A stretch of DNA of 64,000 nucleotides from Cyanophora paradoxa CCMP329 (taxonomy: Eukaryota; Plantae; Glaucophyta): positions 124,001-188,000 of the forward strand of contig QPMI01000022.1 of NCBI GenBank assembly GCA_004431415.1, given 5' to 3'. Below, piece after piece: positions 4,061 through 44,310 of this stretch. How positions within the stretch are numbered: the stretch's first letter is position 1; each line of letters begins with the position of its first letter. The notes under the pieces were generated by a model that was given only the letters and a program-made list of their open reading frames with translations, did not search any database and was not told the origin of the DNA. The position numbers were made by a program, and so were the translations under genes.

Positions 4061-6880
4061 ATGGCCGACGACCCAGAAGCAACTGTGGCCGGCGAGATGG
4101 CGGATGTTATCGCAGCAGTCAAGCGGGATGATGCATCGCTTACTTCCGTGGAGTGCGGGTTCAGCAAGCTCGAGGACGGGGACGTCCAGCGCCTCGCAGC
4201 CGCGCTGCGGGACAATTCGCAGGTCACCAACCTGAAGCTGGAAGGAAACGAGGCGCGTATAGCGAGGAGGGACCGCGGGATGAGCTGTGCTGAATCATGA
4301 GTCCCTCGCAGATCCACGATGCGGGCTGCACTGCGATCTGTGAGGTTCTAGTCAACAATGGCTCCGTGAAATTGCTGGACCTCAGCCACAATCACGTTGG
4401 CTTGTCCGGTTCGTCCTCCGTGATTGCCTCCCGGCACGCGCGGGCCTCCCTCGCCGCTCTCCGACCGAGGCTATTCGCAGGCGCCCAGTCGCTGGCGCGT
4501 GTCCTCACGGCGAACTTCTCCCTTACGACGCTGCAGCTGGATGGGAACTCGATCCGAGACGAGGGTGCCGCGACCATCGCCGCAGCGCTAGCGGAGAATG
4601 CCATTCTGGAGACTCTTACGATGGAGAACAATAGCATCGGCGAGATCGGAGCAAGCGCAATCAGCGACGCCCTGAAGGTCAACACGACTCTCACCAAGCT
4701 GTGCCTCAAGGACAATATCCTCGAGGACACAGGGGCGAGCCACATCGCGGAGGCGCTCAAGGTTCGTTCGAACCGCTCTGCGGGACACTAGCTCGCACTA
4801 GTGCTCGTCGAAGCGGCCGCCAACGGTCCTTATGTTGGTTTCTTACCTGCTCTCCGCAGGTCAACGGGAAGCTGCTTTACGTAGATCTGCGCAACAATCG
4901 CATCGAGGATGAGGGGCTGTGCCACCTTGCCATCGGCATTGCGATGAGCCGGGCGCCCTTCGAGGTCGTGGACCTGCAGACGAACCTGTGCGGGCAGCGC
5001 GGGTTCAAGGCGATTCAGTCCGCGATGAAGAAGAAGTCTTCTACCGACATTCGCATCACATACGACGGTCCGTTGCCGCCGCCCGCGCCCCGAGCTACTT
5101 CCTCTGATGGCCGGTCGCGCAGAGGAGCAGGCAAAGGAGTGGGCGAAGAACCCGCCTCGGAAACAGAAGCGGGAAGAGGTCCCCGACGTGCCGAACAGCC
5201 CCGTGCGCACGCAGCTAAAGCTAAAAGAGGTCGGGGCCCGCCGGCTGATCCCCTGCGCAGGAGGAGGCGCTCGCCGACGCGCTGATGTACTCCGCGAGTA
5301 GCAACGAGGACGAGATGAAGCAGGTGCTTTCTTTCCCTTACGAGCGAGCGAGCGTGCTCTCCTTTCGCTCACGCGCTGCGCCCGCCCGCGTCGCAGATGA
5401 TGGGTGAGGACGAGATCCTTGAGGACTTCGCGGAGGGCTTGCCGGCGACCGAGCCCGACGCAAAGCTCGGCGCGCGGCTCAACCGCATCCTGAACGTCCT
5501 GCAGACGGCAGTCACGGGCCAGAACCAGGTCCGGCCCGGCCGGCCTCCGTCGCCCCGCGCCCTCAAACCCACGGGCCGCCCCAGGACACGGGCAAGGACA
5601 TCAAGCCAGACGACCTCCCGCCCGTCATCAAGCGCATCTTCCAGCGCGTCGATGACCTCCTCCCCGCCCTCCGCAAGCCGCCGGCGCGTCCCCCTTTCTT
5701 TCACCCCACCAGCCGTGCACCGCGCCGCCCACGTCGAGCCGAGCTGACGGGCGAAGCAGACGCCGAACGACGTGACGCTGTCGTGGGGCCAGCTTACGCC
5801 GCGGCTCGGCTCGACGCGGATGCGCGCCGTCGAGGTCCTCGCCTGCCTGATGCGCACGGGCTACTACTGCATCCTGGAGAAGTTCCTGCAGCCCGGCCAC
5901 GTCGTCGAGATCTGCCTCGTGCGCCGCCCAGCTAGCCTCTAGCTTAGCTCAGCTCTGCCTAGCTCAGCTGGCTCGGCGCACTCCCGCACTCCCGCGCGCC
6001 AATATGATGAGACCAATCGCAAAACCTCGTACTAAGTTTCTGATCCATTGTGATCGACTCCTTTACTCTTGCAACTGATCCTCCGCTGGACTAGCATCGC
6101 GTCCTAGCCCCTGGCCCATCGTTGTCATGCTTGCTAACCTCCTCTCCTCTTCCTTTCCGCAGGACCTTTTCTTCCAGTTCTTCTGGAACAACACGCTGCA
6201 CCACGTTGTGGAGGAGATGGTCTACATGTACCTCAACGGCGAGAGCTCCGACCTCCGGCCCCCGGTACTCTCCTCCTCTCTTTCCTCTTTCTTTCGTTCC
6301 CTTCTGAGCCCTCTCCTTTCCTGCAGATCCTGACCAAGTTCCGCCTCATCGAGCGCATCCTGGACGCGCACGAGCAGGCGGAGCGCGACTGGGTGCTCCA
6401 CGTGACGCCCCACAAGGGCAAGGGCGGCGAGACGGAGGTCAGCCTGAGCATCAACTCGGCCGACGTGGAGGAGAAGGTCGGCCACAAGATGTGCGTACCC
6501 GTCCCGCTTCGTTTCCTCTACCCCCCTCCCACCTCATCGCCCCGGCCCCGCCGACGCGCCGCCGCAGCGCCCCGCCGAAGATCCACCGGCGGGGGTACAT
6601 GGGCCACGTCTTCCGCATCGCCAACTCAATCGTGACGGCGGCGAGCAAGTACCCCGAGGTCGAGGCGGCCCTCGCCGGTTCGCCGCGTACCCCCTCCCCC
6701 CAGCCGCGCCCGTACCCCCCTCACGCCGCGCCCCCGCGCAGAGAACGAGGAGTGGCACGAGTTTGTCCGCGAGAAGCTGAAGGAGGTGAACGAGCAGCAG
6801 ACGATGCTCATCGGGGGCGAGCCGCCCCAGCGCAACGCCGCCCCGGAGCTCGGCTCGCAGGACTGGGCCAACTGGATAGC
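4061..6880 (+). CDS. RNI-like leucine-rich repeat protein fused to the C-terminal part of a SAPS (SIT4-associated / PP6 regulatory subunit) domain
   Basis: N-terminal 28-aa LRRs (LKLEGNE|IHDAG, LDLSHNHVG, LQLDGNSIRDEG, LTMENNSIGEIG, LCLKDNILEDTG, VDLRNNRIEDEG). C-terminal SAPS signatures PRLGSTRMRAVEVL, DLFFQFFWNNTLHHVVE, LIERILDA, RRGYMGHVFRIAN and EEWHEFVREKLKEVN. The middle exons and exact stop are uncertain (stop ~6880-7050). Confidence 0.8.
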
Positions 6881-23161: not shown

Positions 23162-26100
23162 ATGGCGTCAAGCTCCAGCGTGGGAACATCCGCAGCATCG
23201 GCGCCGACATGTACAGCGGCCTCGAGCTCGAGCTTCTGCTCCGCGGGTGCACGGGTGCACGTCAGCGCCGTCCCGCAGGACGTGCCGCGCATCTCACACG
23301 TCCTCGCGGACCTTGGCGCTCGCGGGCTTACTTTCTGGTGCGTGATATTCACGTGGTGCCGCGCCGATCTGCGCGCCTTTTGATTCCATTGGCTCAGCGC
23401 GGCACGCGATCTGCTTGGAGCGCTAGCCGCGGCCGAACGCGAGCTCAAGATCGTTGTTTGCGGTGGTGTCCGTCGGGCGACGGACGGGAGCTGCTGCTCG
23501 AGCGACAGATTTCTTCTCGTGGCATCGGTCGGCAGTGCAACGAGTACCACAATTTTCGACGAACTTAATGCCGGTAATAAACCTTCCCTGTCTTGCGCTC
23601 GCTTAAACAATGCGCTATAGCTGTCGATAGCTACCAGGAGCTGCATTTCCCTCCTCCTTCCATTTTCCCTCCCCTTCCCAGTCCGTCCCCCCCCCCCCCC
23701 CCCCCAACACCCACCCACCCACCCACCCACCCATCCCCCACCCACCCCACCCTATCCCTCCGCGGGCCCAGCCCCTTCCCCCGGCCCCTCCCCCCATCCC
23801 CTCCCTCCGCCCGCCCCCACCACCTCGTTCCCCGCCCGCCCCCACCACCCACCCTGGCCTCCTGACTTCCCACTCCAAGCCATCCCCCCCCCCCACCCCT
23901 CCGTCTCCGCCACCACCGCCACCCTGCCCGAACTCCCCCCCCCCCCAACCCCCAACCCTGACCCCCACCCCACCCCCCACCCCACCCCCCACCCCACCCA
24001 CACTCATCCCCACGCCACCCCCACCCTATCCCTCCGCGGGCCCAGCCCCATCCGGTCCCCGGCCCCCAGCCCCCGCCCCCGTCCCACTCCCCTTGCCCTC
24101 GTACCCCACCCCACCCCCACCCCCAACTGGCAACTGGATATGTGATTCGCCTCCGCTTCGCAGCGATCGACACAGGACTGCACGTTTTCCCCCTCTTCTT
24201 GCAGCGTTTCGACAAGGTCATCCAGGCTGGCGGTGATTGCTTCAAGATGCGCATCAGCCCTTTCCAGGTGTCTTAGCTTCGCTTCTAATTTATAAGCGGC
24301 CTCGCCCTAATTTACGAATGCAGCGGGAGCGGCTGCCTGGGGGGCGCGACGACTCCGACTACAAGGAGCGCCTCGACAAGCTTGCCGCTGCCCTCCTTCG
24401 TGCCCAAAGCCGGCGGCCGGAGATGGAGCCGCCCCGGGAGAACCGGCTCGCTCTTGGCCAGCACGACTCTATGGGCGCTGGGGCTCCTGATCCGCCCGGC
24501 GCAGCTGCGGTGAAGTGCACGTGGTCGCAATCGGAATCGCTCGACGGAGCCCCGCCCGTTCAGCCGCGGGTCTTCATCAGGTCGGTTTCATGCTGTCAAT
24601 TTCCGCATTTTTGCAATCTAGTTATAGCTCTCTCTATTATTCGCAGCTACGCTCATAACGATGCAAATGCGGTGCGGCCTATCAAAGAAGCTCTCAAGGC
24701 CAAAGGAGTGTCCTGCTGGTAAGAAGGCGAAATTTGAATGCTCTCGCTATAGATCTAAAGCCCTTCACGCATTTGATAGGTTCGACACGGACCAGCTTGA
24801 GCTTGGTGCGTCTTTGATTTAGGCTCCGAGCAGGCGTCTCTTGAGCTTTTTGGTTTGATTCATTCTTCCCTGCCCTCATGCAGGCATGCGCTGGGTTGAC
24901 GAAGGTACGCGTTGCTGAAGCCTATAGATTTAGATCAGCGCAGAGCATTAGATTAGATCTTGCGGAAGCGCAGCTGCTGAAAGCTTAAGTCGTGTACACA
25001 TTCACAGTGGCGCGAGCCGTTGCGCACTGCACGCACCTCATCTTCTTCGCCTCGGCAAAGTCTGTCGCCTCCCAGGTCTGCTATCGAAATCTTATTGTTC
25101 GCAATTCGCTCTTAACATTTATTCTCTTCAGTATTGCGGTGAAGAGCTTATGTTCGCTTACGATGAACGCAAGAGCATCGTCGTCTTTTACATCGAGCCG
25201 CGGGACGAAGTTGTGCCCAAGCTTCCACCCTCCCTTGAAATGCGACTCGGAATCCACCGCTTCGAATTCGTCGCATATAACTCAAGTGCGTGCATGGACG
25301 CCTCCGCATCGTCGAATGCAATCACTGCGGCGTTTCTAAAATTAACAAAGGTGCGTACCCGCTCTAAAAGTTCGAATTCTGAAAATTATTACCAAATGAA
25401 CTACGCAAATTTAACTTGAAATGCGCGGTCTCTGACGTTCTATTCGTTGCATTAAGCAGGGCCCCGTATGTGTCAATTGCGTGGTTGACAACGGTCATCC
25501 CACACTGGCGCTGAAGTCGAAACCTCGAAAGCGTTCTGTGTCTGAGAGCAGCGGCACCTGTGGAAACTGCAACCGCACACTCGCTATACGCGGCGACTTG
25601 CGGTTCAATGACGTGTTTCCTTCTGAGGTGAACCGGGACGAGCTCAGGAGGCTGAGGCTGGAGCACCTGCTGGACGACGACCGCGAATACGTACCGGAGG
25701 AGCTCGAGCGCGTCAGCCGAGACTCCTCAAGCGCGATCTTCACAGCGGTCGCCTTGCAGCCAGCGGACGAGACTGCACTCTCTGTAAGCTCGAGTTCTCG
25801 GACAAGCGACCGCAAGCCAATGCTGGCAGTGGAAGTCTACTGCAGCCGCACCGAATTCGAAGCTGAAATGTACGTGCCCGCTCCTTGCCAATCAAAGTGC
25901 ACTCATAATCAAGTGCTATTTTTATAATTCACGCAGTCGCGACAAGTGGGAGGCTGCGCAGCGGGCGCTGGCGCGCGGGGCCTGGTGCCGCCTCTATGGG
26001 GTCCCTACCTTGTGGGACTCCTCTGCGGAGCGCCGCGCGATCACGAAGACACTGGTTCGCGGCTGCAGGTATACGCGCTCATGATCATACGCCAGCACCC

Positions 26101-29100
26101 GCGGCCGTCCTTTCCGCTTGATCTAGAGCTTCGTTCTTTTCTGATTTTCTGTCAATCGCAACAGATTGAGAAACGAGATATCGCGCAACACGTTTCTGGC
26201 TGAAGAGGTCGCATCGTTCCTGGAGCAGGTTCGTGTCCAAAATGCGCGCGCGATCGCTTAATTATTCAGTTGAAGCATGTGCAGATGGCGATCATTCTGC
26301 ACTACCTTCACACGAAGGCTGACTTGCAGCACGGCAGCATCTCCAGCGATGCCGTCCGCGTCTCGTGGTCAGAGGGGAGATCGCAATCGGATCCAAATGG
26401 AGCACCGCGGTGCGCTGTTGCACACGCACTTTTTATAAAAATTCATCTTTTAATAAGCGAGTACAGGTTCATGCTGCGAGACATGGGCCTTGCAGTGAGC
26501 TTGCGGGAGCTTTCGCCTGCAGATCGAAGGCTGCGGGAGCAGTTCGACATCTTCTGCGTCGCCGCAGTCGCCCTCGAAATGGTCTCGGAAGGCAGCGTGC
26601 GGGCTTCGTTTCTGGACGACATGAACGTCGATGTCATGGCGACTCCGCCAAAAGACTTTCTTCTCAAGGCCCGAATGTACATGGCGCGAGAGCTCAGAGC
26701 TCCCCTGGTCCCCTTGGTACCCCTTCTCGCTAGATGCCTGCAGGTAATTCATATCTATGAAGTTATATTAATTACTGTGCACGCTTCTTCTTCTGCATCA
26801 AGATTTGCTTCTCCGCCTTCTTTTTCTGATCTGCTGCTGAATAGTTAACGGAGAGCGGGCGGATCGGAGTGGCAGTGGAGCTTTGGGCTGCTGTGAATGC
26901 TACTGGCCTTGCGAATGGTGCGTGAAAACGATCTCGAATCGATTCGCAGACCTCCAATCGCAATTTCGCGGCCGCTCCACAGACTTCGCACGGGATCAAA
27001 ATGACATCGCGAGGAACCAGATCAATCGGTTGCGGCGGGAAATGGCGCAGGCCGCACAGCCTGTTAAAGTCGCGGCTGGAAATCGCGCAATGGACATCGG
27101 TAACAATTCCTATTCAAACGCATTGCAGCGTGCTCCTGTTTCGAAATCCTGGTTGCCTGCAGGCACATCGATATCGGATTTGGAACCGCTCACCATCACG
27201 TTACATGGCTCGGCCACCCGCGTGGATCCCTGCTCCGTATATGAGCTCCTCCTCGGGTCGGCTGTCGCGGCAAACGTCATCAACCCTGTCAACATTATCC
27301 AGGTGCACCAGATCCAATCAGTTGTAAGGCCGGATCTTAATGTATTTACAATGCAGGCTGCCGCTTGCGCTCGCCTTCTGCTCCGTCGCATTGGAACGGG
27401 CAGTGCCGTCCTCGAGTTCGAGATGCCCCGGCCAGTCGTGGACGCCCTGTTCTCCCTCGAGTGCGATCTGCAAGGCTCCGACGCCCGTCTGTTGGCCGAG
27501 TGCGGCGTTCTCGAGCTTTCGACGACGGACAGGCGCCTCCGGCTGCCAGGTCTGCGCTCATAATGATGCTCTTCTTGTCTACGAATCGAACTGCTCACGA
27601 TTTGGTTCCGCACAGAGATCAAGCAGCGCTACTGGCTTGAATGGGGCAGCGACGTCTTTCTTCTGAAAGAATTTCGCTATCCGGTGAGCTTTATACATAC
27701 TGCTATATTATGCTATATATTATTCTCACATGATACCTCTGATGCCACTTTGCAGAAATCTGCAACAGAAAGTATTGAGGTCGGTTCATCACGTGTTATC
27801 CAGGTTCTGAAACCCGTCAACGAGGCGGGCGGGAGGGTGTCTGTCCCCAAGGCGGCGCAAAGCACGCTGAGCGACACCCGCCATGGCTTCCGTTTCGTGT
27901 CAATTCTTGGTGAGTGCGATCTGGCACGTGCACTGCCGTTGTGAGTGTTCGAAAAGCGCGGTCGCGGGTGCATATATATGCGCACGTGCAGGACCCACGC
28001 GTACCGGCAAGTCATACCTCGCCAACTGCCTTGTCGGCACCGAGGACCTGTTCGCCGTTCAGAACAGGAATTCCCTCACGGTTCGTGTACACGATCTGAT
28101 GCTTCGTGTACACGTATTGTGAACGAAGTGGGAACATTCGCCACCTCGCATACCCAGATCGGCATCGACACAAATGAACCGGCCTTGTCGTTCGAAGAAC
28201 TTCTTCGCCGGCACAAGATTTCAGACATCCGGAAGCAGCCGGACCAATGTTCAATGGTGCGAATTCCGCAATCGAGCGCCCTCCCGAGCGCGATTTATAC
28301 GTACGCACACTCCCAGATTCGCTTCCTCGACACGGAAGGCATGGGAGACCGCGAAGCATGGGAGAACGATCTCCAGGTATTTACAGAGTTCGTTATCGAA
28401 TCGACTCGCAATCGATTTCGATTACGCTGCCGGGCTTCAGGTCGTGCTTCCCGCCATCGCAGCGGCGAGCGTCGTCGTGGTCAACTTCTCGGGGCGCCTC
28501 GGCTTGAACAGGTTTTTAGGCGAGGTATGCTCCACCGAAATCTTAAAGAGGTTTGCTCTATCTTAACTCTGAACAGGTCGGTTTCCTTGCCTATGCCTGC
28601 AAGCAACTCCTGCGACAGGAAGCGAGAGAAGTAATTGTAAAATCGAACCCTCTAGATCTGTGGTGTCCGGAATTAATTCGTCGCAGATCCGCACCGCGGC
28701 GGGAAGCTCGAGCGCTAGCTCGAGCTCGAGGCGCCCCCCACTAGGACATCTGCACATCGTTTTTCGGAACTGGACAAATGCAGATACTGCGGAGGAGTAC
28801 CAGGACTATCTTTTCGAGCAGTACCCCGAGGCATGCATTTTGTTCAATGAACAACATCAAAGCAGCTGATGTGAATGCGCAGAACGCGACTAGAGAGCTT
28901 GAAGAAAATACGGCCAGCGTACGGGACGCAATCAAGCGCACGTTCGCTTCTGTTACCGTCCACACCGTTCCCCCGCCATGTGAAGCGGACGTTATTCAAC
29001 GGTGTGAATGGCTTTCCGAGCTCAAGATCTAGATCTGTGATGCCCGTACCGATCTGGGTTTTCGATTTCAGAACTTCAAGCATTCCCTTTTCAGAACTCT

Positions 29101-31188
29101 CTTCGTCTTTTATCAAAAAGATCCACCACCTAGTCCGGTCCATCGCCATCCAGGTATGTCCGAACCTTTCCTAGATTGCACCCCATACCGGCTGGCTGAT
29201 GTTTGATTCCACTTCATGCCCAGCTCTCCCAGCCTATGACGCACCTCCTCGCTCCTTTACATTCAACTGAAGCGCGCGCGGTCGACTTCATTCATGCTCT
29301 TGCACGCTCGGTGAGACGGTGCATTGGCTATCTCTGCATTGTTCATCCATCTTCGTCCGCAGATTGGCTCGTCGGGAGCCCTAGATCTAGATTTCTCTCC
29401 GGTTATGCAAGTCCTGCACCAGCAGGCTTGCGCTCGGGCCCGGCATGTCGCGATGGAGCGCTGGCGGAGAACTGCAAGCACGAGGCTGCTGCCCCCCGTC
29501 AACGCCGGCACGCTCGCCGCAGCGACTCGCGAGTTGGCATTCGAGTGCGAGAGGATATATGAGTCTGAGGCGACTTCGGCGGGTGTCCCGAACGTTGGAG
29601 TGGACCGGGAGGAGAACAAGGGGCTCCTGCGGCGCGAGCTGGCGCAGTGGGCGGCGGACGTCGCGTTCAGGAACGCGGGAGCCCTGAGGGATTTCTTCGC
29701 GGAGGCCGTCGCGAAGGCGCGGGCGGAGCTGCGCGGGCGGGCCGCCGCCCTCCGCGACGCCCCCGGCGTGATCGAGGAGGCGGCGCTCAGAGAGAAGGTG
29801 TCCTTGAATGTATTCAAGATCAGCGTATGCTATTTGCAATTGCTTGAACTCGAACTGACCACAGGTGTCTGCTTGGGCGGAGGACCTTGCGGACGAACTT
29901 CTCAGTCTTGCGGCATCCCGACGCATCACTGCTCCTGATCTAGAAGGCATTCCTGTGCGTTCGAAATCAGACTGCGCACGGCCGGCGCAACGATTCGTCT
30001 TAATCGGCACGCAGGATGCCGACGCGAGCGCCTTCGCCTGCCCTGAGATAGACAAGGCGATACAGGAAGTTTACAGGGCCGCGGAGGACGAGGTTCGGGT
30101 TTCTTTTTATCGGGCCTCCGCTTGCGATCGGGCCTCCGCTTGCGATCGGGCCTCCGCTTGCGATGTCTTGACGGGAATTCGAAGGGCATGGTCCTCGTAC
30201 AGCACATGGCGGTCAAGCGCGACGCGGCCGCGTCGAGGGCCCTCATGGGCGCGGAGCGCACGCTTCGGGAGGCCGTCGCGAGGCTGCCGCTCCCGATGGG
30301 CGCCGCGGCCCTCGACGCGGCGCTCGCAACTGCCCGACAGGCTGCAGGCGGGGCGAATCCTCCGCGCGAATTCGGAGCCCTCGCCGACGCTATCGAAGCG
30401 GACGCTCGCAACCGCAACGTCGCGGCAGCAGCAGCTTCCCTTCAAAGTATCGTTCACCGCGCCATGCGCGCTGCTCAGAGCGCCCCCGACATCGATATCG
30501 AGAATTGGGAGAAAAGCACCAGCAAGGAACTTGCGTCGGAGAAAGCTCGGGAGGCCTTCCAGCTCGCCGGGCTCGCCGGAGACGTGCCGGGCCTCTCCGC
30601 TGCGCGGGAGGCGCTGGAGAAGGAGCTGGTGGAGGAGTGCGAGTCTGCCCTCCGCGCCTGTAGCCGCGAGCGCGAAGAGGCCGCTCGCCGCGCCCAGCAC
30701 GCTAGCCAGATGGAGAAAATGGTGCTCGGCATGGAGCAAATGAAAGTTCGTCATGTGTTCGATTCTGTAATTTTGAAGTCGACTGACATGCATTTTCTGT
30801 ACTGTGCATGCGCAGCTGGACAACCGACGCCTGACAGAGGACCTTGAAAAGATAGCGAGCGAAGGACAGAAGCGTCTTCAAAGCCTAGAACGCAATGTGC
30901 GACCCCTGTGACTTTACACTGTGCATACATCCATTAAACATCAGGCCATCTTAGGTAATGGAGGCGGCTCGAGCTGCTGCGCAGCGGCCGATGCTCGACT
31001 ACGGAGGCGGAGGTGGAGGCGGGGGTGGCTGGGACATGTGCTCCTACAGCCCGGGGCCAGGGCGCTCCTCGGGCGGCGGGCGCTCATATGCGGGCGGCGG
31101 CCGAACGATCTACACGGGGCCGCGGGGCGGCCAGTACTACATCAACTCTAACGGGAACAAGACCTATTTGCAAACCCGCTTTAGCTAA
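23162..31188 (+). CDS. Multidomain putative immune protein: TIR (degenerate) - TIR - CxxC..CxxC - pseudokinase - unknown domain - GBP/atlastin-family GTPase - helical stalk - basic adaptor-like tail
   Basis: The inter-domain junctions checked splice in frame. TIR2: RVFI|SYAHND..IKEALKAKGVSCW|FDTDQLEL|GMRWVDE|VARAVAHCTHLIFFASAKSVASQ|YCGEELMFAYDERKSIVVFYIE. Kinase fold: MLAVEVY, ILHYLHTKADLQHGSIS, FMLRDMGLA, DIFCVAAVALEMVS, LLARCLQ. GTPase: FVSILG|PTRTGKSYLAN, SLT|IGI, IRFLDTEG, HIVFRNW, TVPPP. Tail: GRTIYTGPRGGQYYINSNGNKTYL. Confidence 0.8.
23640..24125 (+). repeat. C-rich low-complexity intron with an internal duplication
   Basis: Long C runs inside the ~590-nt intron within the first TIR (23575-24162); CCACCCTATCCCTCCGCGGGCCCAGCCCC occurs at ~23746 and ~24021. 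Confidence 0.8.
30109..30162 (+). repeat. 18-bp perfect tandem repeat x3 in an intron
   Basis: ATCGGGCCTCCGCTTGCG at 30109, 30127 and 30145. Confidence 0.9.
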
Positions 31189-31723
31189 TGGACGTCGCTC
31201 TTTAGCAGCGCGGCTTCAGGGCTAGGGCATATTGTTGCAATTGCCACTCTTTTACTGATCGTACCAATCGATTGCCAGTTAGGATCCGGACTATTTCCGA
31301 TCGCGATTGTTTCGTTTACGTTTATGTAAAGATGTTGGAGAAAATTTTCGAAATTTAGATTAGGTGCCTCGGACCCCGTAGTCTATGACGGCTCCCAAGC
31401 TTAAGCTCGCAATCGGGTCGCGATCGTGGGGCTACAGGCCAAGGGCGGAGGCCACCTCGTCGCCCTCGCCGCCCGCCACCTCCGGCCGCGGCCCCCTCCC
31501 TCCAAAATAAGGCTGACCATGAGCCTGTTTTGACCAAGCTCATGATGAAGCCGGCCGGCGCCTTGCAATTGAAGCATGTCTAGATCACGGGGACGCCTTG
31601 CAATAGCCTTGCAATAGGTGCTAGGGGGACGGGGGGACGGGGGGTGTTGCAGGGATAGCGGGGCGTCCTAGCGTCCTAGGTGCTGGGTCTGCTCTCCTCC
31701 TGGATCCGGGGCAGGTCATGGTC

Positions 31724-31778
31724 ACCTGAAAGAGGGAGCTGTCCGCCGCGAAGTTGTTCTCGATGACGGCCACCTGCC
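31724..31778 (-). pseudogene. Orphan duplicate of one exon (VAVIENNFAADSSLFQ) of the Toc34-like gene
   Basis: Near-identical to 35434-35488, including both splice sites; the neighbouring exons are not recognisable. Confidence 0.7.
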
Positions 31779-32106: not shown

Positions 32107-34505
32107 TCAAAGCGCCACGCTCCAGTTCGACTGGGCCAAGCAGCCGCGCAGGAAACTCCGCGCTGAGTCCACGAGGCGCCTGCCGCTGGGCTCGTCTCGT
32201 TCGACATCCACCCCAATCTCCACCGTGATCCGCAGGCGCCGCCCGAGGGGTACCAGAAGGACGAGGGGCGCCAGGTCGGCCTCGCGCGAGACCGGAACAT
32301 AGATTTCAAGTTTACCGGCGTCCGCCAGGGCGCCGGCGAAGGCCCGGAAGAGCCCGAGACTGGGGCGCTGCTCGCGCTGCAGATTGGTAATGCTTGCTTC
32401 GAGCGTGAGGCCCGGCCAGGGCTGCAGAGAAGCCAGCTCCTCGAGGCTCACTTCCCTGTCCACCTGCGCGTGATCATGTTTATGATCATGCATATGATCA
32501 GGACCGTATTCGAATTAAATGAGGTTCCAGTTCATAGTTAATCGCAAACCGCAAACCGCGAATCGAACCTGAACCGCACAGCTCCGAAGCTTGGGCCGCA
32601 GACGTGATATCAGCTCAGCTATGCGAGATACATGCCCTCCTATCTGCAACGTGCGATTGCAATTCGGTGCCTTGCAATAGGGTGCGGCCGCGGGGGGGCA
32701 AACATACGTCGAGATCGACCGCCAGGCCCGGAATCGCGTTGAGCGCGTCGGTAAAGGGCCGCGTGTCCGAGGTGGGTGGAAGCTCCGCGATACTGCATAA
32801 CCGAATATGAAGATAGCTGCTTTATAGTGAAGGCACTGAAATCGGACCTGAAGAAAGCCTCTTTTAGGCTGCAGAGATGGGCAATATTAATGGGTGCGGA
32901 GCGCTGAAGGAGCGCGGGGTTCGACCCCCAGCTCTGATTGTGAGGCCGACTTACGTATACAAAGTCCCACAAGTTTGCGATCGTAAGAGGGCCCCTCGCA
33001 CCTTGAAAGAGAGGCGCTCAAGACCCGAGAGCTTCCCAAGCGCCTCAAACAAGCGCCCTGCGGCGTCGGAGCCCATATGATTAAAAAGCGCTGTAGAAAT
33101 GCCCCGTCCAAAGTGAAGCCCGCGAATGATCTGGATGAATATTCAAAATCGATGTCGGTAAATCGAATTCTAATTCCACTGCGAACCTGCGCGGCTCGCG
33201 CTTGGCCGGCTAGGGCATCGAGGACGTCCGCAGGGCCGATGTGAGGCTCGCGGCTATCATTCAAATCGACGTCGCCGTGATCATGAATCGAAAGCTGAGC
33301 CGGATACATTCCGTATAGTGTTATGGCAGGTAATAAATCGTGTGCATACGCACCTCGCCCGTGACGCTCAGCTCAAGGCGTTCGAGGTGGGGTTTCGAGT
33401 CCGCAAGCAAGAATGGCGCGGCGCGGCAGAGATGAGTTAAGGGCACAGCGACGTGGAGCGAGCGGATCGCGGGAAGGGCGCCCAGGAGCGTGTTGACGAA
33501 GCTGGCGCCGATGGGGATGGGGAAGCTCAGGTGCTCGAGGGATGCGAAGGGCATCAGGACGAGGGGAAGCATGCCGTCCTTGTTGAAAAGGAAACCGCCC
33601 CAGAAGAAGAATTTGAATCCACCGTAATCATTTGCATACATTTCGACATCCTCGATATTCTTGTCTATTTCAAGCTGGCGGCAATTGCAATTGCAATCGT
33701 GAGTCGAGGTCAACGTCAAGGATCGACGATCGAAAGGAAACCGATCGCGTTCGAGGTCTCGCACCCGCGTCAGCTGCGGCAGCGCCCCGAGCGCCGCGAG
33801 GAGTGCCTCGATGCGTGGCAATTTGTCGTAAAACGGGTGTAGAGGATCGAACAAAGTCACTGCATCTTCTAACAATGCCGCTTCACGACCATCCTCTAAT
33901 TGCGTCGAATCGCGAAACTCGACGTGCACGGAGCTGATTGTTGGCGAAGTGCACGCGAGGCTTGACACGAGCTCGATCGCTATGAGCGCTTCCGTGATCA
34001 TGTCGTCGATGACGTCAAAAGCGCTAGCGCTGAAGCGGAGATGGAGGGCCCGCGCGCGGCCCCACGCCGCGAAGCCAGCCTCCGGATGCAGCGAGGCTAG
34101 TGCGCGACGCATTCGCTGCAGATGCCTCTCGTTGAGCTCGGCGCGCAAGTCATCCGCATCTTCGAGCCGAAGGTGATCGGCTGCACTCGCCAACGCCCGA
34201 ATTTCCGCCTCCGGCGGCGCGAGATCCAGCTCGTCCCAGACGATATTCCGGAGGACGCTTCGCATGCGACGGCAAACTTGGTACGGGCGGCACTGCCGGA
34301 TCTTTGGCGTCAGAAAAACCGATTTCCGCGGTACGAATTTCGCGCGAACGCAGCGCACAATCAGGACGTCGTTCAGGCCGACGTCGACAGAGCGGACGAT
34401 CTGCACGAGCAGCTCGTCCGGGAGCGCATCCAAGCGCGGCTGAAAGCTCGAGATTGCGGCGTCGCGATCGACGCGCGCCCGCTTGGGATTTGGCTCTGAC
34501 TCCAT
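32107..34505 (-). CDS. F-box protein with degenerate LRR-like C-terminus
   Basis: RLDALPDELLVQIVRSV...VCRRMRSVLRNIVWDELDL (F-box), followed by LPQLTR, ASLEHLSF, PAIRSLHV and PHLERLEL repeats. The 3' exons are approximate. Confidence 0.7.
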
Positions 34506-34900: not shown

Positions 34901-37900
34901 CTACTGGGCGGCGCGGCGCCAGGCGAGGGCGGCGACGAGGGCGAGGGCGGCCGCCGCCGCGAGCTTGCCCTCCGACTTGGCCAGCAGCGGCCCGATCAGC
35001 GGCACCTGCCGCCAGGGCCAAGCGGCGGTCAGCTGCAGGCGGCCGGCTAGCTCGCGCTGCGCGGCAAGCTGTAGAAGGGGCGGGCGCGCCTGGGGCCCCG
35101 AGCGGTAGGCGGTGGAGGTCTTGCGGCGCTCGAGGAACTCCGGCACGCGCGCGATGAACGCCTGCCGGCGCCGCCCCCGTGAGGGGGGGGAGGGGGGTGC
35201 GGAGGATGGGGGGGCGGGGGGGGGGGGGAGTGGGTGGTGGCGAAGAGGGGGTCAGCTGGTAGCGGGGTGTCCTAGGTGCTGGGTGCGAGGTGTAGATCGA
35301 GTATTCAAGGAGGTCACGAGGTGGGGCGGGGGCGGAATGGGGGAGGGGGGGGAAGGGGGCGGGGGGCCGGGGTAGGGGGAAGCGGGGTGTCCTAGGCCCT
35401 GGGTCCACCCCTGGGCTCGGGGCGGGTCGGGGTCACCTGGAAGAGGGAGCTGTCCGCCGCGAAGTTGTTCTCTATGACGGCCACCTGCCAAGGTTAGGCC
35501 CGAAGGTTAGGCCAAGGTGGAAGTGAACAAGGTTAGGCCAAGGGAGAAGTTGGGGCGCTGAAGGTTAGGCGATCGGGGCGATCGGGGCGCGGCGCACGGG
35601 GACGCGGCGGCGGGTGTTGCCGGAGATGCGTCCGATGTCGTTCTGCAGCGCGTTCGTGCGCCGCCCCGAGTACTCCACGTACGAGGGCGTGGATAGGACC
35701 GGCGAGGGGGCGCCGCCGGCGGCGGAGGCTTCGGGGGAGGAGTTGGAAGGCGGCCCGGCCGCCTTGGGCGCGGCGCCGGCGCCCGCGTGCGGCTGGGCCC
35801 GGCCCTGGACGCCGGTGGTCCGGGGGTCGAGGGGCAGGGATGCCCCGTGCGTCAGGATGCAGAAGCTGCGGCGCCAGGAGTTAAAAGGAGAAGAAGACGA
35901 AGAAGCTTAAGAGTGAAGCTAATATATATAATAATAAATAAGAAGAAGGGGGGCGGACGTGTGGTCCCAGACGCGGGAGCCGAACTTGGCCGTGACGAGC
36001 TTGATCGAGGGCCGCGCCGACCGGTGCGAGTCTGCGCGGGGGCGGAGCGGCGCGGGTCAGCCGCGAGCGGGGGCAGGCGCGGCAGGGGCGGGAGGGTGGG
36101 GGTGGGAGAGGGTGGGGCCGGGAGCGGGGTGGGGTTTGTGGGGGGTACACATGCGGGGATGGGGGGGGGCTGCGCATACACCGGAGAGATGGGGGTACGT
36201 CTAGATGGCCGGGGGCTGGAAGGGGACGTCGGGAGCGGGGGGGGGGGTACGCCCGTGGGAAAACTCGAAGGGGTACGCGGGCGGCGCGGGCGCACCGAAG
36301 CGCTCGACGTAGAAGATGGTGTGGACCTCGGGCAGCGTCGACACGTACGCCGCGATCTGAGGGCGGGCGGGCGGGCGGTCAGAGGACGCTCGAAAGACTA
36401 GGAAGGTCGGGGAAGCTAGAGGAAGGGTCAAAGGAAGCTAGAAAGAAGGCTCGACCCGAAGGTTCTAACGAAGCGGCTTCGGGCGCGGGCGGGGCGGCTC
36501 CAAGGCAGGCCGTATGGAGGTCGGCCCAGGCTGTCTCTAACGAAAACGGAGCGGCCTCGGGGCAGGGCGGGGGCGGGGCGCGCCTTCTCCGCGGAGGCCT
36601 CGTCGTCGATGCCCGGTGTGCTGCGGGAGCGCCCGGAGCGCCTCAGTCGAGCGGAGCGAGGCGGGCGGAGGGCGGCTCAAGAGAGCTAAATGCATCGAAA
36701 TTTATCGGCCAGGTTTGAGCTAGGACTTCTCGGACTTGGGAGCGGACTCGAAGCGGGGCTGGCGTAGGGAGGGGGGGGGGGGGGAGGAGGGAGGGGGTGG
36801 GGGCGGCTAGTTTTGAGCTAGGGGGCAGCTCAAGGGAGGTGGGGTAGGGGTCCGGGCGGACTCGATGATGCGGAGGACGTAGTCGCCGTACTGGAACTCG
36901 CACTCGAAGACCTCCGCCTGCTGCGAGAGGAACGCGTTCACCTCGCACACCTGCAAGCGGGGCGCTGTGAGCCGGGGCGGAGGCGAAGGTTCTTCGGAGG
37001 CGGGAGGGGCGCTGGGCCGGGGCCAGCGCCGGCGTCCCCTCTAGCCCGGCCGCTAGTAGCCCCTCTAGCCTGGCCGCTAGAAGCCCCTCTAGCCTGAGAA
37101 GGGGCTGAGCGCAGGCAGGAGGCGGGGCGAGCGTCCCGCGCTAGACGCTAGGCAAGCTCGGGGGGCCGGCCTTCTCCCTAGTTCCTCCGACCCTTCTTCG
37201 AGCTTCCCCGACCTTCCTAGTCTTTCTTCCGCTAGACGCTAGTACTACGGCAGCTTCGGGCGAAGCTCGGGCGCTCGCTCACCTCGCGGCCCACCAGGTT
37301 GTTGATCGTCGTGCTCTGCGCGCGCGCGCGCGGCCCGCCTCCTCAGCGCGCGCCGCGCCGCGCCGCGCCGCGCCGCGCGCGCCGCGGACCTTCCCGACGC
37401 CCGACGGACCGATGAAAATCAGGACCTTCTCCTTGGACGACGCGCCGCGCCGCGCCGCGCCGCCGCCGCTGCCGGGCCGCCCCGCCCTCCCCTCGATCTG
37501 CTCCAGCTGAAGCGCGAAGTCCCGTATGCCCGGCGCGTCCGCCCCCGTGTGTTCGGTCGTGCCCCGGCCCGCCCCGTGCGCCGAGTCGGGCCCGGCCGAG
37601 GCCCTCCCCGCGTCCTGCCGGTCCCGAGCCGCCCGCGCCCTCGGCTGGATCGTGTGCCCGCGCATCGTCGGCGGCCGGTGCATCAGCTCGCTGCGCGCGC
37701 GGGCGACTCGGCGCGGGCCGGAAGACATGCAGAAGCACTCGAGGCGCAGGCGCACCTGCACTCCTTGCAGTAGCTCGCGCTGCACTCCTGGCACGAGACG
37801 AGGTCCTCGGACGGCTGCTGGCAGTAGGCGCACAGGTTCGTCGCTGCGAGGCGCGCGCGGCCCCGGGGAGTTAGCTGAAGGGAATTCTTAACGAAGAGAG

Positions 37901-38581: not shown

Positions 38582-40117
38582 ATGTCGGCCGACATCGCCC
38601 GCGCGGCGGTGCTGTCGCGCGCCACCGTGCTCGGCCTCGGCGCGCTGTCGGCCAGCCTGCTCGAGCCGTACGACACCTCGGCGTCGGTTCCCGACGCCAG
38701 CGGCGAGCCTGCCGCCTCCGGCCCCCTGCGCGGCTTCGGCAACTGGGACGGCGTCTACTTCCTCGCCATCGCCCGCAGGGGCTACGTGTACGAGCAGGAG
38801 CACGCGTTCTTCCCCCTGTACCCACTCTGCGTGCGCTGGCTCGCCGCCGTCGGTGCGCGCCCGGCCCGCGCCCGTGGCTCTGTCGACGTCGGTGCTGACG
38901 GGCGCGCGCGCCCGGCCCGCCCGCAGCGAGGCCCCTGCTCCTCGGGGCCGTCTCGGAGTCGCAGCTCTTCCTTCTCTCCGCGCTCGTCGTGTCGAACTGC
39001 GCCTTCGTCGCCGCGGCGGTCGTCCTCCACCGGTCCGGCGTCCCGCCCGCCCCGCGCCCCGCCCGCTCAGCGCGCCCGATCCGATCCGAGCGGCGGCGCA
39101 GGCTCTGTCTCGCGCTGACGAGCGACGCTGCGCTCTCGCGGCGGGCGGCGGCGCTCTTCTGCGCGGCTCCCGCCTCCGTGTTCCTGTCGGCCGCCTACAC
39201 CGAGTCCCTCTTCGCCCTCCTCTCCTTTTCGGGCGCCCTGCTCCTCGCCCGGGGCCGCCCCACACCCGCCGCCCTGCTCTTCGCCCTCGCCGCCGCCACG
39301 CGCTCCAACGGCGCTCTCCTCGCCCTCCTCCTCGCCCACGCCGGCGTCGCGGGCGCCTGGGCCGCCCGCCCCCAACCCCCTGTGCGCCTTTCCCGTACCC
39401 CTCCCCACCGCCCTTCGAATCTTTTATCCCCCCGCAGAAGGCGCTGCTCTCTCTCGTGGCGGCGGGCCTCCGCTGCCTCCTCGTCCTCGCCCCCCTCGCC
39501 GCCTTCCAGTACCAGGGGTACAGCCTCTTCTGCGCGGGCCCCGCCCCCCCTCGCCCCTGGTGCTCGCGCCCCGTACCCCTCCTCTACAGCTTCGTCCAGG
39601 ACCGCTACTGGTGCGCGTAGCCCTCCCCGGGTACCCCGCTTCTCCCGTACCCCCGCCCGACCCGGGAGGGGGGTACAGGAACGTCGGCTTCCTGCGGTAC
39701 TACGAGCTGAAGCAGATCCCGAACTTTGCTCTGGCGACGCCCGCCCTCCTCCTCTCCGCCGCCGGGGTACTCCGCTACTCCTCCGCCGCCCCCCGCCGCC
39801 TCCTCACCGCCGGCATCGACCCGGGCCGGGGCCCGGCCAGTAGCTACCTGAGCCCCCGCGTCGCGCCCCTCGTCCTGCTCTGGGGATTCTCGGCCCTCGT
39901 CGCCGCCTTCTGTATGCACGTGCAGGTCGCCACCCGCTTCCTCTCCGCCTCGGCCCCCTTCTATCTCTACTGCGCGACCCTCGCCGCCCCGCCCCCGCCG
40001 GCCGCCAAGAATGCCCGACCCCCCCTGACCCGAAAGGCGGCCGCCGTCTGGGGGTACTTTTTGGGGTACGCCGTCGTCGGCACCGTCCTCTTCACCACCT
40101 TCTACCCCTGGACCTAG
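38582..40117 (+). CDS. PIGV: GPI mannosyltransferase II (PIG-V/Gpi18)
   Basis: YDTS, NWDGVYFLAIARRGYVYEQEHAFFPLYP, PASVFLSAAYTESLFALLSF, TRSNG, LYSFVQDRYW|NVGFLRYYELKQIPNFALA, MHVQVATRFLS, and the terminal LFTTFYPWT*. Confidence 0.95.
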
Positions 40118-40326: not shown

Positions 40327-43300
40327 CTAGGCGAGGTTCCTGAGGACGCGGCACTCGGCGGCGCTGAAGGCCACGAGGGTCTTCCGGGGGGCCTCCCCTA
40401 GCACCACGTGGCGCGCCTCTGGCCCCAGCCCCGCCCCCGCCTTCCTCACCTGAGGAAGAGGAAGCGGTCCTTAGAAATAGTGACGGGGGTGGGAGGAGGG
40501 AGGGGGGTACGGCGTCGAGGACGGCGTCGAGGGTGCAGAGGGGCACGCCGGAGAGGTCGAGGTGGAGGAGGGGGCCCGTCGTGACGGCCTCCAGCGCCTG
40601 CCTGCGGGGCAGCGACGGGTCAAAAGAAGAAAGGAGAAGGAGGAGAGGAGGCGGATGTTTATGTAGACTATCGCTTCAACGATAGACAAGGACGAGCAAG
40701 CGAACGATAGACAAGGATTAGCAAGGACGATGAAAACCATTGCTTAAAACATGCTAAGCAGATCTAATGCATCCATGGCATTAAACAACGCTAAAAAGAA
40801 GCAAGGAGGAGAGGAGGCGGATCGAATTGGAAACGCTAAGAAGATCCCAGGGCTAGCAAGCAAAGCAAGCAAGCGGGGGGGCGCACTGGACGTCTTCCGG
40901 GCCGAGGCCGGCGGAGGCGGCGCACACCCTCCTCAGGCCCGCCTGCCCGGGGAGGGAGGGACGTCAGGCTCGCGGCTCGAGGCTCCAGGCGAACGTTCGG
41001 CATTGGGCGCCTTAGCTCGGAGCCCAGGGGCCGTCAGGCTCGGGGCTCGGGGCTCGAGGCTCGAAGGACGGCGAGGTCGGAAGGGGAGCTAGGGCTTGGG
41101 TTGGAGCCTAGCAAGCTAGAGAGGCGTCAAGGGCTTCATGGCTTTAGGAGGGGTGGGAGAGGTGGTGCAAGGAAGAGGGGGGAGGGTGGGGTGAGGGGTG
41201 ACGGGAGGGAGGTGGGGAGGGGCAAGGAGGGCAGGGGGGGGGGGGGGGGGGGGGGGGGGCATGGTTAGCTTCAAGCTTAGGAACCTGCAGCTTAGCAAGC
41301 TAGAGATCAGTCTAAACTAATTCATTACTCGCCTGGCCGTACTCGGAGAGGGCGATGGCCTCGCGGAAGGCGGTGACGCCCTCGTGCGCGACGCCCGCCA
41401 CGTCCATCCCCTCCAGCCCGGGGCTCCCCTCCAGCACCTAAGGGGGTACACGAGGTCAAGCACGGCCTGGAGGGCCCGCCTCCGGGACTTAAGGGGGACC
41501 TCTTAGGATCCCGGCCTCCCGCCCCGCCCCGCCCCGCCCCGGGGCTCGCCTCCGGGACATAAGCGGAGGAGGAGGAGGAGGAGAAGGCGGGGGGGTGGGG
41601 GGGTGAGGGGGGGCGAGGGGGGGGGAGGGGGTGCGGGGGAGGCGGGCGAAGGCCTACCCTGGGTAGGCCGAAGACGAAGATCATGCCGAGGCGGTGGCCC
41701 CCGATGCCGAAATCGCCTGTATACCCGGGCCGGGTGAGGCCACAAGGGGGGTACGCGAGGGGCCGGGGGGTACGCGCACGGATGTTGGGGTTGCGGGAGA
41801 CCGACGCCGCGAACATCAGCGTGGTCCGCTCGCTGCGGCGGGAAAACTTCAGCGGAGGAAAGGAGGGGGGTACGGGTACAGGTATTTCAGGTATTTCGGT
41901 CAGGTATTTTCGGCGCACTCGACGGCGGGATTGTAGGAAATGTCGATGGCGGCCAGCTCGGGATTCCGTCCCGGCTCCAGGGCCCGGCACAGGCGCTCCA
42001 CCCCAGCCTGGCACCGTTTCAGAGGGAGGGGGGAGGGGAAGGGGGGTACGGCGACGGCGCACCCTGGACAGGTTGTTGTGCGAGAAGTCCATCCGGGTGA
42101 TGTGGTACGTCCCCGGGATGAACTAGGGGTGGGTGTGTGTGGGGGGGTTGGGGGGGGGGGGGGTTGGGGGTTGGGGGGGGGGGTGGAATCAGGGAACCGG
42201 AAGAGGGGAGGCGCGGGGGGGAAGGACTGGGGGGTACCTCGAGCATCTGGATGTCGTCGTCGACGATGCCGTTGTGGGAGACGACGAGCCGCTCGACGCT
42301 CGGCGCCCCTGTCCGCCCGTGGAAGATCTGAAGGAAAAAAGTGACTTCTCTTCTTGGGGGGGGGGGGGAGTTCGGGGTACAAGAAGCGCACCTCGCCGAT
42401 CTTCTGCATGCTCTGCGTGCTCCCGATGCCGCAGTGGCGCAGGTCGATCAGCTCGCACCTGCGTCGCATTCAAGTTGAGAAAGCGGGCGGGCGGGCGGGC
42501 GGGCGGGGGCGAGCGAGCCTGCGGGGCGCGGTGCGCAGGCCAGCAAGGAAGCGGGCCGAGGCGAAGCCCATTGTGCGGTTCCCCGCCAACTGCGGGGCGG
42601 CTCGACAAGGCAGGAAAACGAGAGGGAAGGCGCGGGGCGCGAAGCAAGGTAAAAAGCGTACCCGGATGGTGGAGAGGGCGGCGTGCATGGCCAGCCCGAC
42701 CGACGCCGAGCCGCTCAGGCAGTCGTCAATCAGGCAATTGCTCTGCTCAGATCAGATCGGATCAGATCGGAACAGATTCGGGCTCAGGTGAGGTGGGGCA
42801 CCGCGTCGATCTCGCGGAGGCGGGAGCGGCCCCGCGAGGCGACCGAGCCTCGCCAGAACGAGTCGAAGCCGATGGACCCTAAGGAAGAAGAAGAAGAGGA
42901 AGGGAAGTTAGAAGGTTACAGGGTACGCTGAGCTGGCGGGCGGGCACCCAGGGGGTTGTCGGCGATGGAGAGGGTGATCAGCTCGGGCAGCTCCGCGAGG
43001 ATCCGGCCGATGATGGCGGGGGCGAAGGTCCCCTCGATGCGGCAGTCCGCGAGCGAGAGGTGCGCCAGCGTCGGGCACTGCTTCGCGACCGCCGCGAGCA
43101 GCGGTTCGATGGCGGCGTCGTTTCCCAAGTCCGAGCCGCTCAGGTCCAGCCGCTGGAGCGCGGCGGTTTCCTGGGCGGAGGAGGCGGACGGGGGCGGGCG
43201 GAAGTGGAAGAACGAGGTGGAGGGGATGGGCCGGACGCGGGGCGGCGGGGGCGGCGGCGTGGGGAGGGGGTCCGGCGGCGGGCGCCGGTTCGGGAGGTGG

Positions 43301-44310
43301 GCGCCCATGGGCGGGGGGCGGGCCCACAGGGACGAGTGGGGGGCGTACCCCAGCCCCGGGGACACGCGGAGGGAGCGGAGGGTCGGGAGGCGGGAGACGA
43401 GGGACCCGATCTCGTCCGAGGAGCCGTTCGGGCCGCCTGTGACCGAGAGCTCTGCCAGCGGCGCCGGCGGCGGCAGCGCAGAGAGGAGCGAGAGGGCCGC
43501 GCCGTGGGCCGAGTGGCCGCAGCCGGGCCCCAGGTCGATTTCGAGGCACTCGAGGGCGGGCAGAGCGACCAGCGCCGACCGGAGCCGCTCGAAGGCCTTG
43601 TCGCTCCCGGGCGGGACGGGCGGGGGCGGGCCCGGCGGGGGCGCCGCGTCGTAGCGCGGCTCGGACCCGAAGAGGCGGGGCGGACCCGAGTCGTAGGCGG
43701 CGAGGGCGGCGTCGGCGTTGGGACGGAGCCGCAGCTCGCGCAGGTGCGGGCACGCCCGCAGCTCCAACGCCAGGCGCTCGGCGAGCTGGAGCGGTAGGGA
43801 GGCCTGGACCTCGAGCGCGGCGAGCGAGGGGCTCCGCCTGTGCACGCGCGGCGCGGGCGGACGGTTAGCCCCGCAGCGTGGTGCGCGCTCGGACGCGATT
43901 TCCGACGGGCGCACCGAATCCATCGGGCGACAATGTCCACATCGGACTCGGTTGCGTCTTCGAGGCCGTGCAGGACGAGGCGCGTACGGTGCTCATCAAC
44001 GGAAGCCTTCCAGGCGCGGCAGACCTGGGCCGAACGGTCGGCGCGGAAGCGCAGGCGTCCAATGGGTCGGGCCGGACCGCGCGGAGCACGCCCTTGCACG
44101 GCACGGCCTGGAAGATCTGGGACCAGAGCGCGTCCGGAAGCTCGGAGGCCCGGTTCTCGATGGTCAGCCCCGCGAGGGAGATCGGCGCCTGCGGCTCCTG
44201 GGGCCCGGGAGCCGGCAGGTCGTCCGCGTCTGGAGAGGACGGCAATCAGCGCTGCAGGTGCTGCCGGCGACGAACGCACCCAGCGGCGGGAAGTCGGCGT
44301 CGGTGTACAT
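40327..44310 (-). CDS. F-box / RNI-like LRR protein
   Basis: ASELPDALWSQIF..VLRA|VCRAWKASV (F-box), then CPHLRELRL, LQRLDLSGSDLGN, LAHLSLADCRI, LITLSIADNPLG, ELIDLRHCGIG, MDFSHNNLS and AIDISYNP. Confidence 0.8.

Follow-up and report, generated by a model that had tools for sequence, protein, structure and literature searches.

The 64,000-nucleotide (nt) stretch of Cyanophora paradoxa CCMP329 analyzed here (contig QPMI01000022.1, positions 124,001 to 188,000; hereafter the window) carries a 35-exon gene, most of which corresponds to the public gene model g5608. In a single chain, the gene encodes a degenerate TIR domain (TIR1), a second TIR domain (TIR2), a four-cysteine motif, a pseudokinase, a GBP-type GTPase with a long helical region behind it, and a basic adaptor domain at the C terminus (Table 1). 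New in this study are the finding of the same TIR-TIR cassette on a second switch, the basic-adaptor C terminus, and the lack of the Asp residue of the G4 motif in the GTPase.

Table 1. Features of the g5608 locus (window positions; residues numbered as in the stored protein P0001)
Feature	Position	Strand	Remarks
Full gene	23162..31188	+	35 exons, 5151 nt, 1716-1722 amino acids (aa); exons 4-35 = public model g5608 (P0001)
TIR1, degenerate TIR	23252..24267	+	Exons 1-3; Glu at 23561-23563 on the catalytic column
Intron 2	23574..24163	+	590 nt, C-rich low-complexity sequence
Inter-TIR linker	24324..24563	+	First helix common to paralog P0015, p 0.03
TIR2, TIR_2 type, probable NAD+-cleaving enzyme (NADase)	24564..25350	+	P0001 83-223; Pfam TIR_2 (PF13676); catalytic Glu155 (P0001) at 25144-25146
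Two CxxC pairs, 26 residues apart	25469..25570	+	Seen in the sequence; possible zinc ribbon
Predicted pseudokinase	25643..26916	+	Gly-loop lost; activation segment short; profile tests
Helix and further domain between kinase and GTPase	26917..27860	+	No family match
GBP-type large GTPase	27861..29144	+	P0001 792-1048; Pfam GBP (PF02263)
Ala/Glu/Arg-rich region, ~440 aa	29224..30896	+	In the place of the stalk and long terminal helix of GBPs, by position and composition
Gly-rich linker, last exon	30955..31098	+	Seen in the sequence
PBCV-specific basic adaptor domain, C terminus	31099..31185	+	Pfam PF08789; no CaaX box

The spliced 35-exon frame translates into 1716 aa followed by a stop codon, with no internal stops. 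Its 34 introns comprise 33 of the GT-AG type and one of the GC-AG type (28831-28882), and all measure 52-110 nt with the sole exception of intron 2. In leave-one-out scoring, the donors reached a median of 7.0 against -1.1 at decoy GT sites (p 1e-18), and the acceptors reached 5.8 against -0.3 at decoys (p 1e-15). The modelled frame was the best-scoring one in 33 of the 35 exons, and guanine-cytosine (GC) content was lower than in the flanking exons for 30 of the 34 introns. These splice and frame statistics exceed chance. The gene is real and has one continuous reading frame. Six junctions between domains had been named in the initial annotation, all of which exist and are in frame in our model. 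The order proposed there for a single protein (two TIR domains, four-cysteine motif, pseudokinase, GBP GTPase, helical region) is supported, and fixed frameshifts, raised there as a sign against the gene, were not found in the 5151-nt frame.

When used alone as a query, exon 30 retrieved P0001 (1572 aa, 100% identity), the EukProt entry Cyanophora paradoxa tig00000113_g5608.t2; an isoform.t1 is also listed. The g5608 junctions are identical to ours over exons 4-35, except that g5608 uses an exon 33 acceptor 18 nt upstream (start 30185). The public model was obtained with BRAKER1/Augustus trained on RNA-seq data (PMC6704402). It is a prediction and not a complementary DNA, yet it was derived independently of our model. 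The genome authors caution that their gene models need curation (PMC6704402), and in the part of the genome paper's supplements that was covered, g5608 is not mentioned. An 18-nt unit occurs three times without change in intron 32 (30109-30164), which also has two in-frame acceptors, at 30184 and 30202. The public isoforms t1 and t2 are separated by donors 6 nt apart (28631-28636); this donor choice may stem from hints in the RNA-seq data, in which case the gene would be expressed. Exons 1-3 are absent from the public model, which starts with exon 4, probably because of the long C-rich intron 2. The TIR1 junction across this intron is not contained in g5608 and is supported by the paralog P0015. 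A residue number in our full model equals the P0001 number plus 150. Databases were queried with the stored P0001 for exons 4-35 and with exons 1-3 one by one. In exon-wise Pfam scans, the tail alone was clearly matched; the short exons left TIR_2 and GBP with weak scores.

TIR2 matched Pfam PF13676 with 74.5 bits (cut-off 28, expect value [E] 1.3e-20). It aligned with Cat1 and AbTIR, its best structure matches, with Glu155 opposite its counterpart Glu in Cat1, a CRISPR effector. Relatives of TIR2 are present in the retron and Thoeris families of bacterial defence. TIR2 is probably an NADase. In NZ_CP128402.1 (L134), a Ser/Thr kinase gene directly follows a bacterial TIR gene similar to TIR2; this order echoes that in g5608 and may be a coincidence. 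The four-cysteine motif downstream of TIR2 gave no significant family in the Pfam scan.

TIR1 had no Pfam match when exons 1-3 were scanned singly. Exons 1 and 3 each matched TIR1 of P0015 (p<=0.001), and exons 1 and 2 fell in order on an all-bacterial TIR profile, with weak scores (E 0.005 and 0.015) and with the end of exon 2 on the catalytic Glu column. TIR1 is therefore very probably part of this gene. The first TIR of P0015 is collinear with TIR2, and TIR1 is, by its apparent descent, a decayed tandem copy. Its Glu is present here and is not kept in P0015, indicating a probable scaffold role. Thus, of the two TIR domains initially described, the second is confirmed and the first is retained as a probable, degenerate one.

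P0015 (C. paradoxa tig00021522_g22112, 1044 aa) consists of the degenerate TIR without the Glu, the shared linker helix, a TIR2 that is 67% identical to that of P0001 and retains the catalytic Glu, and then a P-loop nucleoside triphosphatase (NTPase). The NTPase scored 20.2 bits against NACHT, below the cut-off of 26.7 (E 6e-4), and was also below the cut-off for AAA_16 (E 5e-4); Walker A, Walker B, and winged-helix-like motifs are visible. The assignment to NACHT is based on these Pfam scores and motifs. Since P0015 shares TIR1, the linker helix, and TIR2 with g5608, the TIR-TIR cassette appears as a unit on two switches in one genome, namely a STAND-like NTPase in g22112 and a predicted GBP in g5608. 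With its tandem TIR and NACHT/STAND-like NTPase, g22112 is a gene resembling nucleotide-binding leucine-rich repeat receptors (NLRs) in a glaucophyte. Its Walker A motif has Ser in the usual Gly place, and the C-terminal end may be missing from the model.

The region downstream of the cysteines showed no matches in the Pfam, NCBIfam, and PHROG libraries. Against a kinase profile that we built from 94 natural kinases, residues 285-600 were recognized by hhalign at 92% (E 7e-7). In the controls, 100 shuffled sequences gave at most 2.3%, and segments lying mostly outside the kinase gave at most 4%. Similarly, hmmsearch scored the region at 9.8 bits, with at most 1.1 in shuffles. A fold model of the region (predicted local distance difference test [pLDDT] 71) found kinases as structure matches, which is partly circular because unrelated kinases served as its input alignment; the kinase claim is therefore based on the two profile tests and not on this model. 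A single-sequence AlphaFold model of residues 224-800 had a pLDDT of 32. The only result of sequence searches of the kinase region against the PDB, PspF, was rejected as a spurious match. The beta-3 Lys is replaced by Glu (Glu348, 25832-25834) and the catalytic Asp by Ser (Ser443, 26336-26338), while the metal-binding Asp472 is retained (26480-26482). Because the Gly-loop, the beta-3 Lys, and the catalytic Asp are lost, the domain is classified as a pseudokinase: a predicted kinase fold is present and, judging by its residues, it is catalytically dead. Behind it, residues 584-790 had no matches in Pfam, NCBIfam, or PHROG. A TRADD-N-like domain considered for residues 623-735 was discarded, with no match to PF20694 and an hhalign value of 0.1%, the level of shuffles (against a narrow six-sequence profile).

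The GTPase matched Pfam GBP with 31.8 bits (cut-off 21.1, E 1e-7) and was aligned by hhalign to four natural GBPs at 98% across 229 columns. Thus, the domain profiles expected from the initial annotation were found above the Pfam cut-offs for TIR_2 and GBP, and for the kinase they were missed in Pfam and found in the hhalign profile test. In alignments with human GBP2 and GBP5, the G1 motif contains Arg811 as the arginine finger (28000-28002), Lys814 (28009-28011), and Ser815. The G3 motif (residues 874-878) is intact. For G2, Thr837 is plausibly positioned and is retained in the paralog P0002, with alignments differing on the register. At G4, Arg963-Asn964 (28765-28770) stand instead of Arg-Asp, and the other register also lacks the Asp. 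We therefore speak of a GBP-type domain and not of a canonical GBP; the GBP/atlastin assignment made initially holds for the domain, and neither a canonical G4 nor a membrane anchor accompanies it. The same G4 change in human GBP1, D184N, is reported to diminish GTPase activity and oligomerisation (PMC5571548; bioRxiv 2021.08.26.457804). The missing Asp probably reduces nucleotide affinity.

P0002 (C. paradoxa tig00021137_g18977, 623 aa) is a GBP paralog that is ~80% identical to g5608 across the GTPase, stalk, and tail; its G1 and G3 motifs are unchanged, and it ends in the same Gly-rich linker and basic adaptor. Its model begins at the GTPase, retains intron sequence, and is probably mispredicted, because the equivalents of exactly exons 25-28 are skipped. 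The stalk region is 80-91% identical in P0002, and an internal duplication of this region was not significant (p 0.22). The last exon is 94% identical, making the tail the best-conserved part between the paralogs.

The tail matched PF08789 with 29 bits (cut-off 20.4, E 1.2e-6). It is also similar to Bacteroidota plasmid proteins, with 68-83% identity over 24-25 aa; one of these matches is a nuclease. The PBCV basic adaptor is also present on DNA-associated virion kinases of chloroviruses (PMC3281028). Inspection of the sequence revealed no Cys at the C terminus and hence no CaaX box, and no transmembrane anchor or hairpin was found, the sole hydrophobic stretch lying inside the GTPase core.

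The lower GC content reported initially for the locus was confirmed (0.58 compared with 0.68 in the remaining window). GC at third codon positions (GC3) is 0.70, and it is ~0.84 and ~0.94 in two neighbours with roughly located exons; intron GC is 0.47 compared with ~0.68 in these neighbours. The low-GC zone continues to ~34 kb, where it contains an F-box-like gene and a partial duplication, and is thus not specific to the TIR-GBP gene. It may fit a fast-changing patch better than a recent transfer. The low GC could not be attributed to a recent acquisition from bacteria, given the 34 introns, the lack of a close bacterial relative, and the equally low F-box-like neighbour. The latter is a 394-aa open frame on the minus strand (33324-34505; GC3 0.72) with a weak F-box-like match (E 0.005). 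An exon-like fragment is directly duplicated with 78% identity (31624-31778 and 35339-35489) and brackets the low-GC F-box region. Elsewhere in the window lie high-GC genes, namely a multi-exon gene with leucine-rich repeats (LRRs) by eye (4061-6880, plus strand), a PIG-V mannosyltransferase (38582-40117, plus strand, E 1e-11), and an LRR protein (42919-43923, minus strand). Two tandem copies on the minus strand (~60470-61315 and 62630-63390; 76% identical) look lectin- or LamG-like by eye, and their scanned pieces had no Pfam match.

We propose that g5608 acts, as a single chain, as a receptor for immunity or cell death, in which a trigger on the tip or on the pseudokinase would lead to GBP assembly, NAD+ cleavage by TIR2, and death or a signal. 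We assign a probability of about 0.45 to this reading of the sequence; some immune or death role, all readings taken together, is probable. TIR NADases are switched on by clustering. In the resting state, the long terminal helix would be folded back, and the pseudokinase would act as a brake or as guarded bait. The trigger would most likely be a polyanionic invader surface or nucleic acid on the basic tip, which occupies the place of the lipid anchor in human GBP1; alternatively, an invader enzyme may act on the pseudokinase. Upon triggering, the GTPase domains would dimerise and pack, which would concentrate the N-terminal domains and could bring four or more TIRs together. TIR2 would then cleave NAD+, with TIR1 serving mainly as a scaffold, and the cleavage would result in cell death or a nucleotide signal. 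The loss of the G4 Asp may raise the firing threshold or relax base specificity. In GBP1, an auto-inhibited monomer binds GTP, forms a head-to-head dimer, opens, and packs laterally via the GTPase domains (PMC10897159).

Together, g5608 and g22112 suggest that an immune receptor may have taken a membrane-coating GTPase into service as its on-switch. In the initial annotation, the GTPase was put forward as taking the place of NACHT/NB-ARC; this idea gains comparative support from the predicted presence of the same cassette on the g22112 NTPase and is weakened by the missing G4 Asp. The pseudokinase had been proposed there as sensor or decoy. The kinase is indeed predicted to be dead, and the basic adaptor, which had been overlooked, is at least as good a candidate for the sensor. 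More tentatively, glaucophytes may possess a class of receptors analogous to NLRs, in which a self-assembling GBP would replace the STAND ring as the platform for TIR NADases, a mobile cassette would have been swapped between STAND and GBP, and the virus- or bacterium-like basic adaptor and the pseudokinase would be integrated sensors.

Several points weigh against a GBP-switched receptor. The identity of the trigger is a guess, and the NACHT score of P0015 lies under the Pfam cut-off. The G4 Asp is gone, and the equivalent D184N weakens human GBP1. The stalk was not recognized by GBP_C profiles (Pfam; hhalign 0.4% against a two-sequence profile). About 570 residues lie between TIR2 and the GTPase, so that TIR clustering may be loose. 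The highly conserved tail (94% compared with 80-91%) would point to an unchanging partner more than to a sensor that evolves fast. Finally, the TIR-GBP fusion was observed in a single gene from a single species.

Because of the missing G4 Asp, we weighed as the main rival a GTP-independent immune receptor, in which TIR clustering would be under the control of the pseudokinase or the tail, with the GBP as a weakened scaffold. The D184N effect in human GBP1 fits this view, as does the fact that the kinase is dead too, so that several modules look like repurposed scaffolds. However, the arginine finger, the P-loop Lys and Ser, and G3 are kept here and are invariant in P0002, and we regard this possibility as unlikely. 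Somewhat less likely still is a sensor-helper pair, in which the TIR-TIR cassette would mainly be a homotypic dock between g5608 and g22112, in either direction, with both needed for firing. Zebrafish GBP-CARD acts as an adaptor (PMC6400534), TIR2 is similar in both proteins while the remainder is entirely different, and TIR1 is degenerate, with its Glu absent in P0015. Both TIR2 copies retain the catalytic Glu, however, and recent exon shuffling would explain the TIR2 similarity equally well.

GTPases of the GBP/atlastin clade also have housekeeping roles. Such functions would be compatible with a membrane- or nucleic-acid-associated GTPase in stress or developmental signalling, with the TIR products as the signal. 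This non-immune role is improbable: the protein has neither a transmembrane hairpin nor a CaaX box, and a shuffled gene that lies in a low-GC zone and had no relatives beyond its species in the searches made has the look of a conflict gene and not of a housekeeping one. A recent, near-neutral exon-shuffling chimera in decay would agree with the degenerate TIR1 and kinase, the lost G4 Asp, the low GC3, and the failure to find orthologs, but with no stops or frameshifts across 5.1 kb and 34 introns, with key residues retained, and with the GTPase motifs and tail kept in the paralog, we consider it very improbable. Least credible is the erroneous joining of two or more neighbouring genes, to which the authors' curation warning (PMC6704402), the start of the P0002 model at the GTPase, and the omission of exons 1-3 from the public model could point, since from TIR2 on each inter-domain gap is a low-GC intron of 52-110 nt with good splice sites, a length that leaves no room for both a terminator and a promoter (predicted mean intergenic distance in C. 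paradoxa, 770 bp; PMC6704402), and the independent model g5608 also joins these domains. For exons 1-3 alone, the doubt that they belong to the gene is larger, amounting to a minor but appreciable chance that they do not.

If the single-chain receptor reading is correct, g5608 would be a natural TIR-GBP in which one can ask whether GBP assembly alone switches on an enzymatic death effector, and g22112, with the same TIR pair and a STAND-like NTPase, would be the built-in comparison. GBPs are older than interferon and also occur in algae and protists. In animals, their place is upstream of death effectors, for the most part in trans. Glaucophytes branched early within the plant supergroup, and the gene would offer an initial way into their cell-autonomous immunity.

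Searches of protein collections with a word-based, length-limited method, which makes for a weak blank, detected no relatives beyond C. paradoxa except generic TIRs, and contig and plasmid searches likewise detected none outside this species apart from generic TIRs. The same architecture was not found in a second protein by these searches, which are insensitive to divergent relatives. The TIR_2 and GBP pair is already present in the precomputed annotations of g5608, and no paper was found that remarks on it. In line with the initial annotation, to which no description of the architecture was known, no TIR-GBP fusion surfaced in the literature searched, a collection with few subscription papers; GBP-CARD, GBP-DED, and TRADD-N-GBP fusions are known.

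Several known systems share parts of this architecture. The chlorovirus proteins A278L and A282L combine a kinase fold and the basic adaptor in a single chain, as here, and are DNA-associated in virions (PMC3281028); in g5608, ~960 residues separate the kinase from the adaptor, and the matches of the tail are to plasmid proteins of Bacteroidota. Cat1, AbTIR, retron-TIR, and ThsB-like Thoeris proteins have the TIR_2 fold and the catalytic Glu in common with TIR2. These bacterial effectors are activated by other sensors, and no GBP fusion was among those found here. With human GBP1, GBP2, and GBP5, g5608 shares the arginine-finger GTPase, G1, G3, and, by position and composition, a putative long helical C-terminal half; it differs in lacking the G4 Asp and the CaaX box, in ~940 extra N-terminal residues, and in the basic adaptor tip. 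Intron-free genes for GBP-family GTPases of 490-1025 aa were also noticed on IMG/VR contigs (L138-L142), three of which are from giant-virus bins; these genes may be viral or may be host contamination. Dead kinases serve as bait or as a brake on a death effector in ZAR1 with RKS1/ZED1 and in MLKL. The effectors and the switch of these systems are unlike those of g5608, so that the resemblance is one of analogy only.

Closer in design are animal fusions of a GBP with an immune signalling domain, in which oligomerisation is proposed to drive the assembly of complexes. Zebrafish GBP3/GBP4-CARD and amphioxus GBP-DED have been described, together with the assembly of inflammasomes through oligomerisation of the GBP (PMC6400534), as have invertebrate TRADD-N-GBP fusions (PMC8195603). 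The partners in these fusions are non-enzymatic animal adaptors, whereas g5608 combines a probable NADase and a pseudokinase in a unicellular glaucophyte. In bacterial counter-invader systems, a GTPase displaces the STAND domain (PMC8195603). TIR-NACHT and TIR-NB-ARC receptors resemble g5608 in having an N-terminal TIR effector before a nucleotide switch, and g22112 carries the same tandem-TIR cassette. In g5608, the switch is a dynamin-superfamily GBP GTPase instead of a STAND domain, and a pseudokinase is inserted. The Pfam scan of P0001 detected no STAND NTPase and no LRR, WD40, or TPR sensor. Thus, g5608 is not an NLR, though it may work like one.

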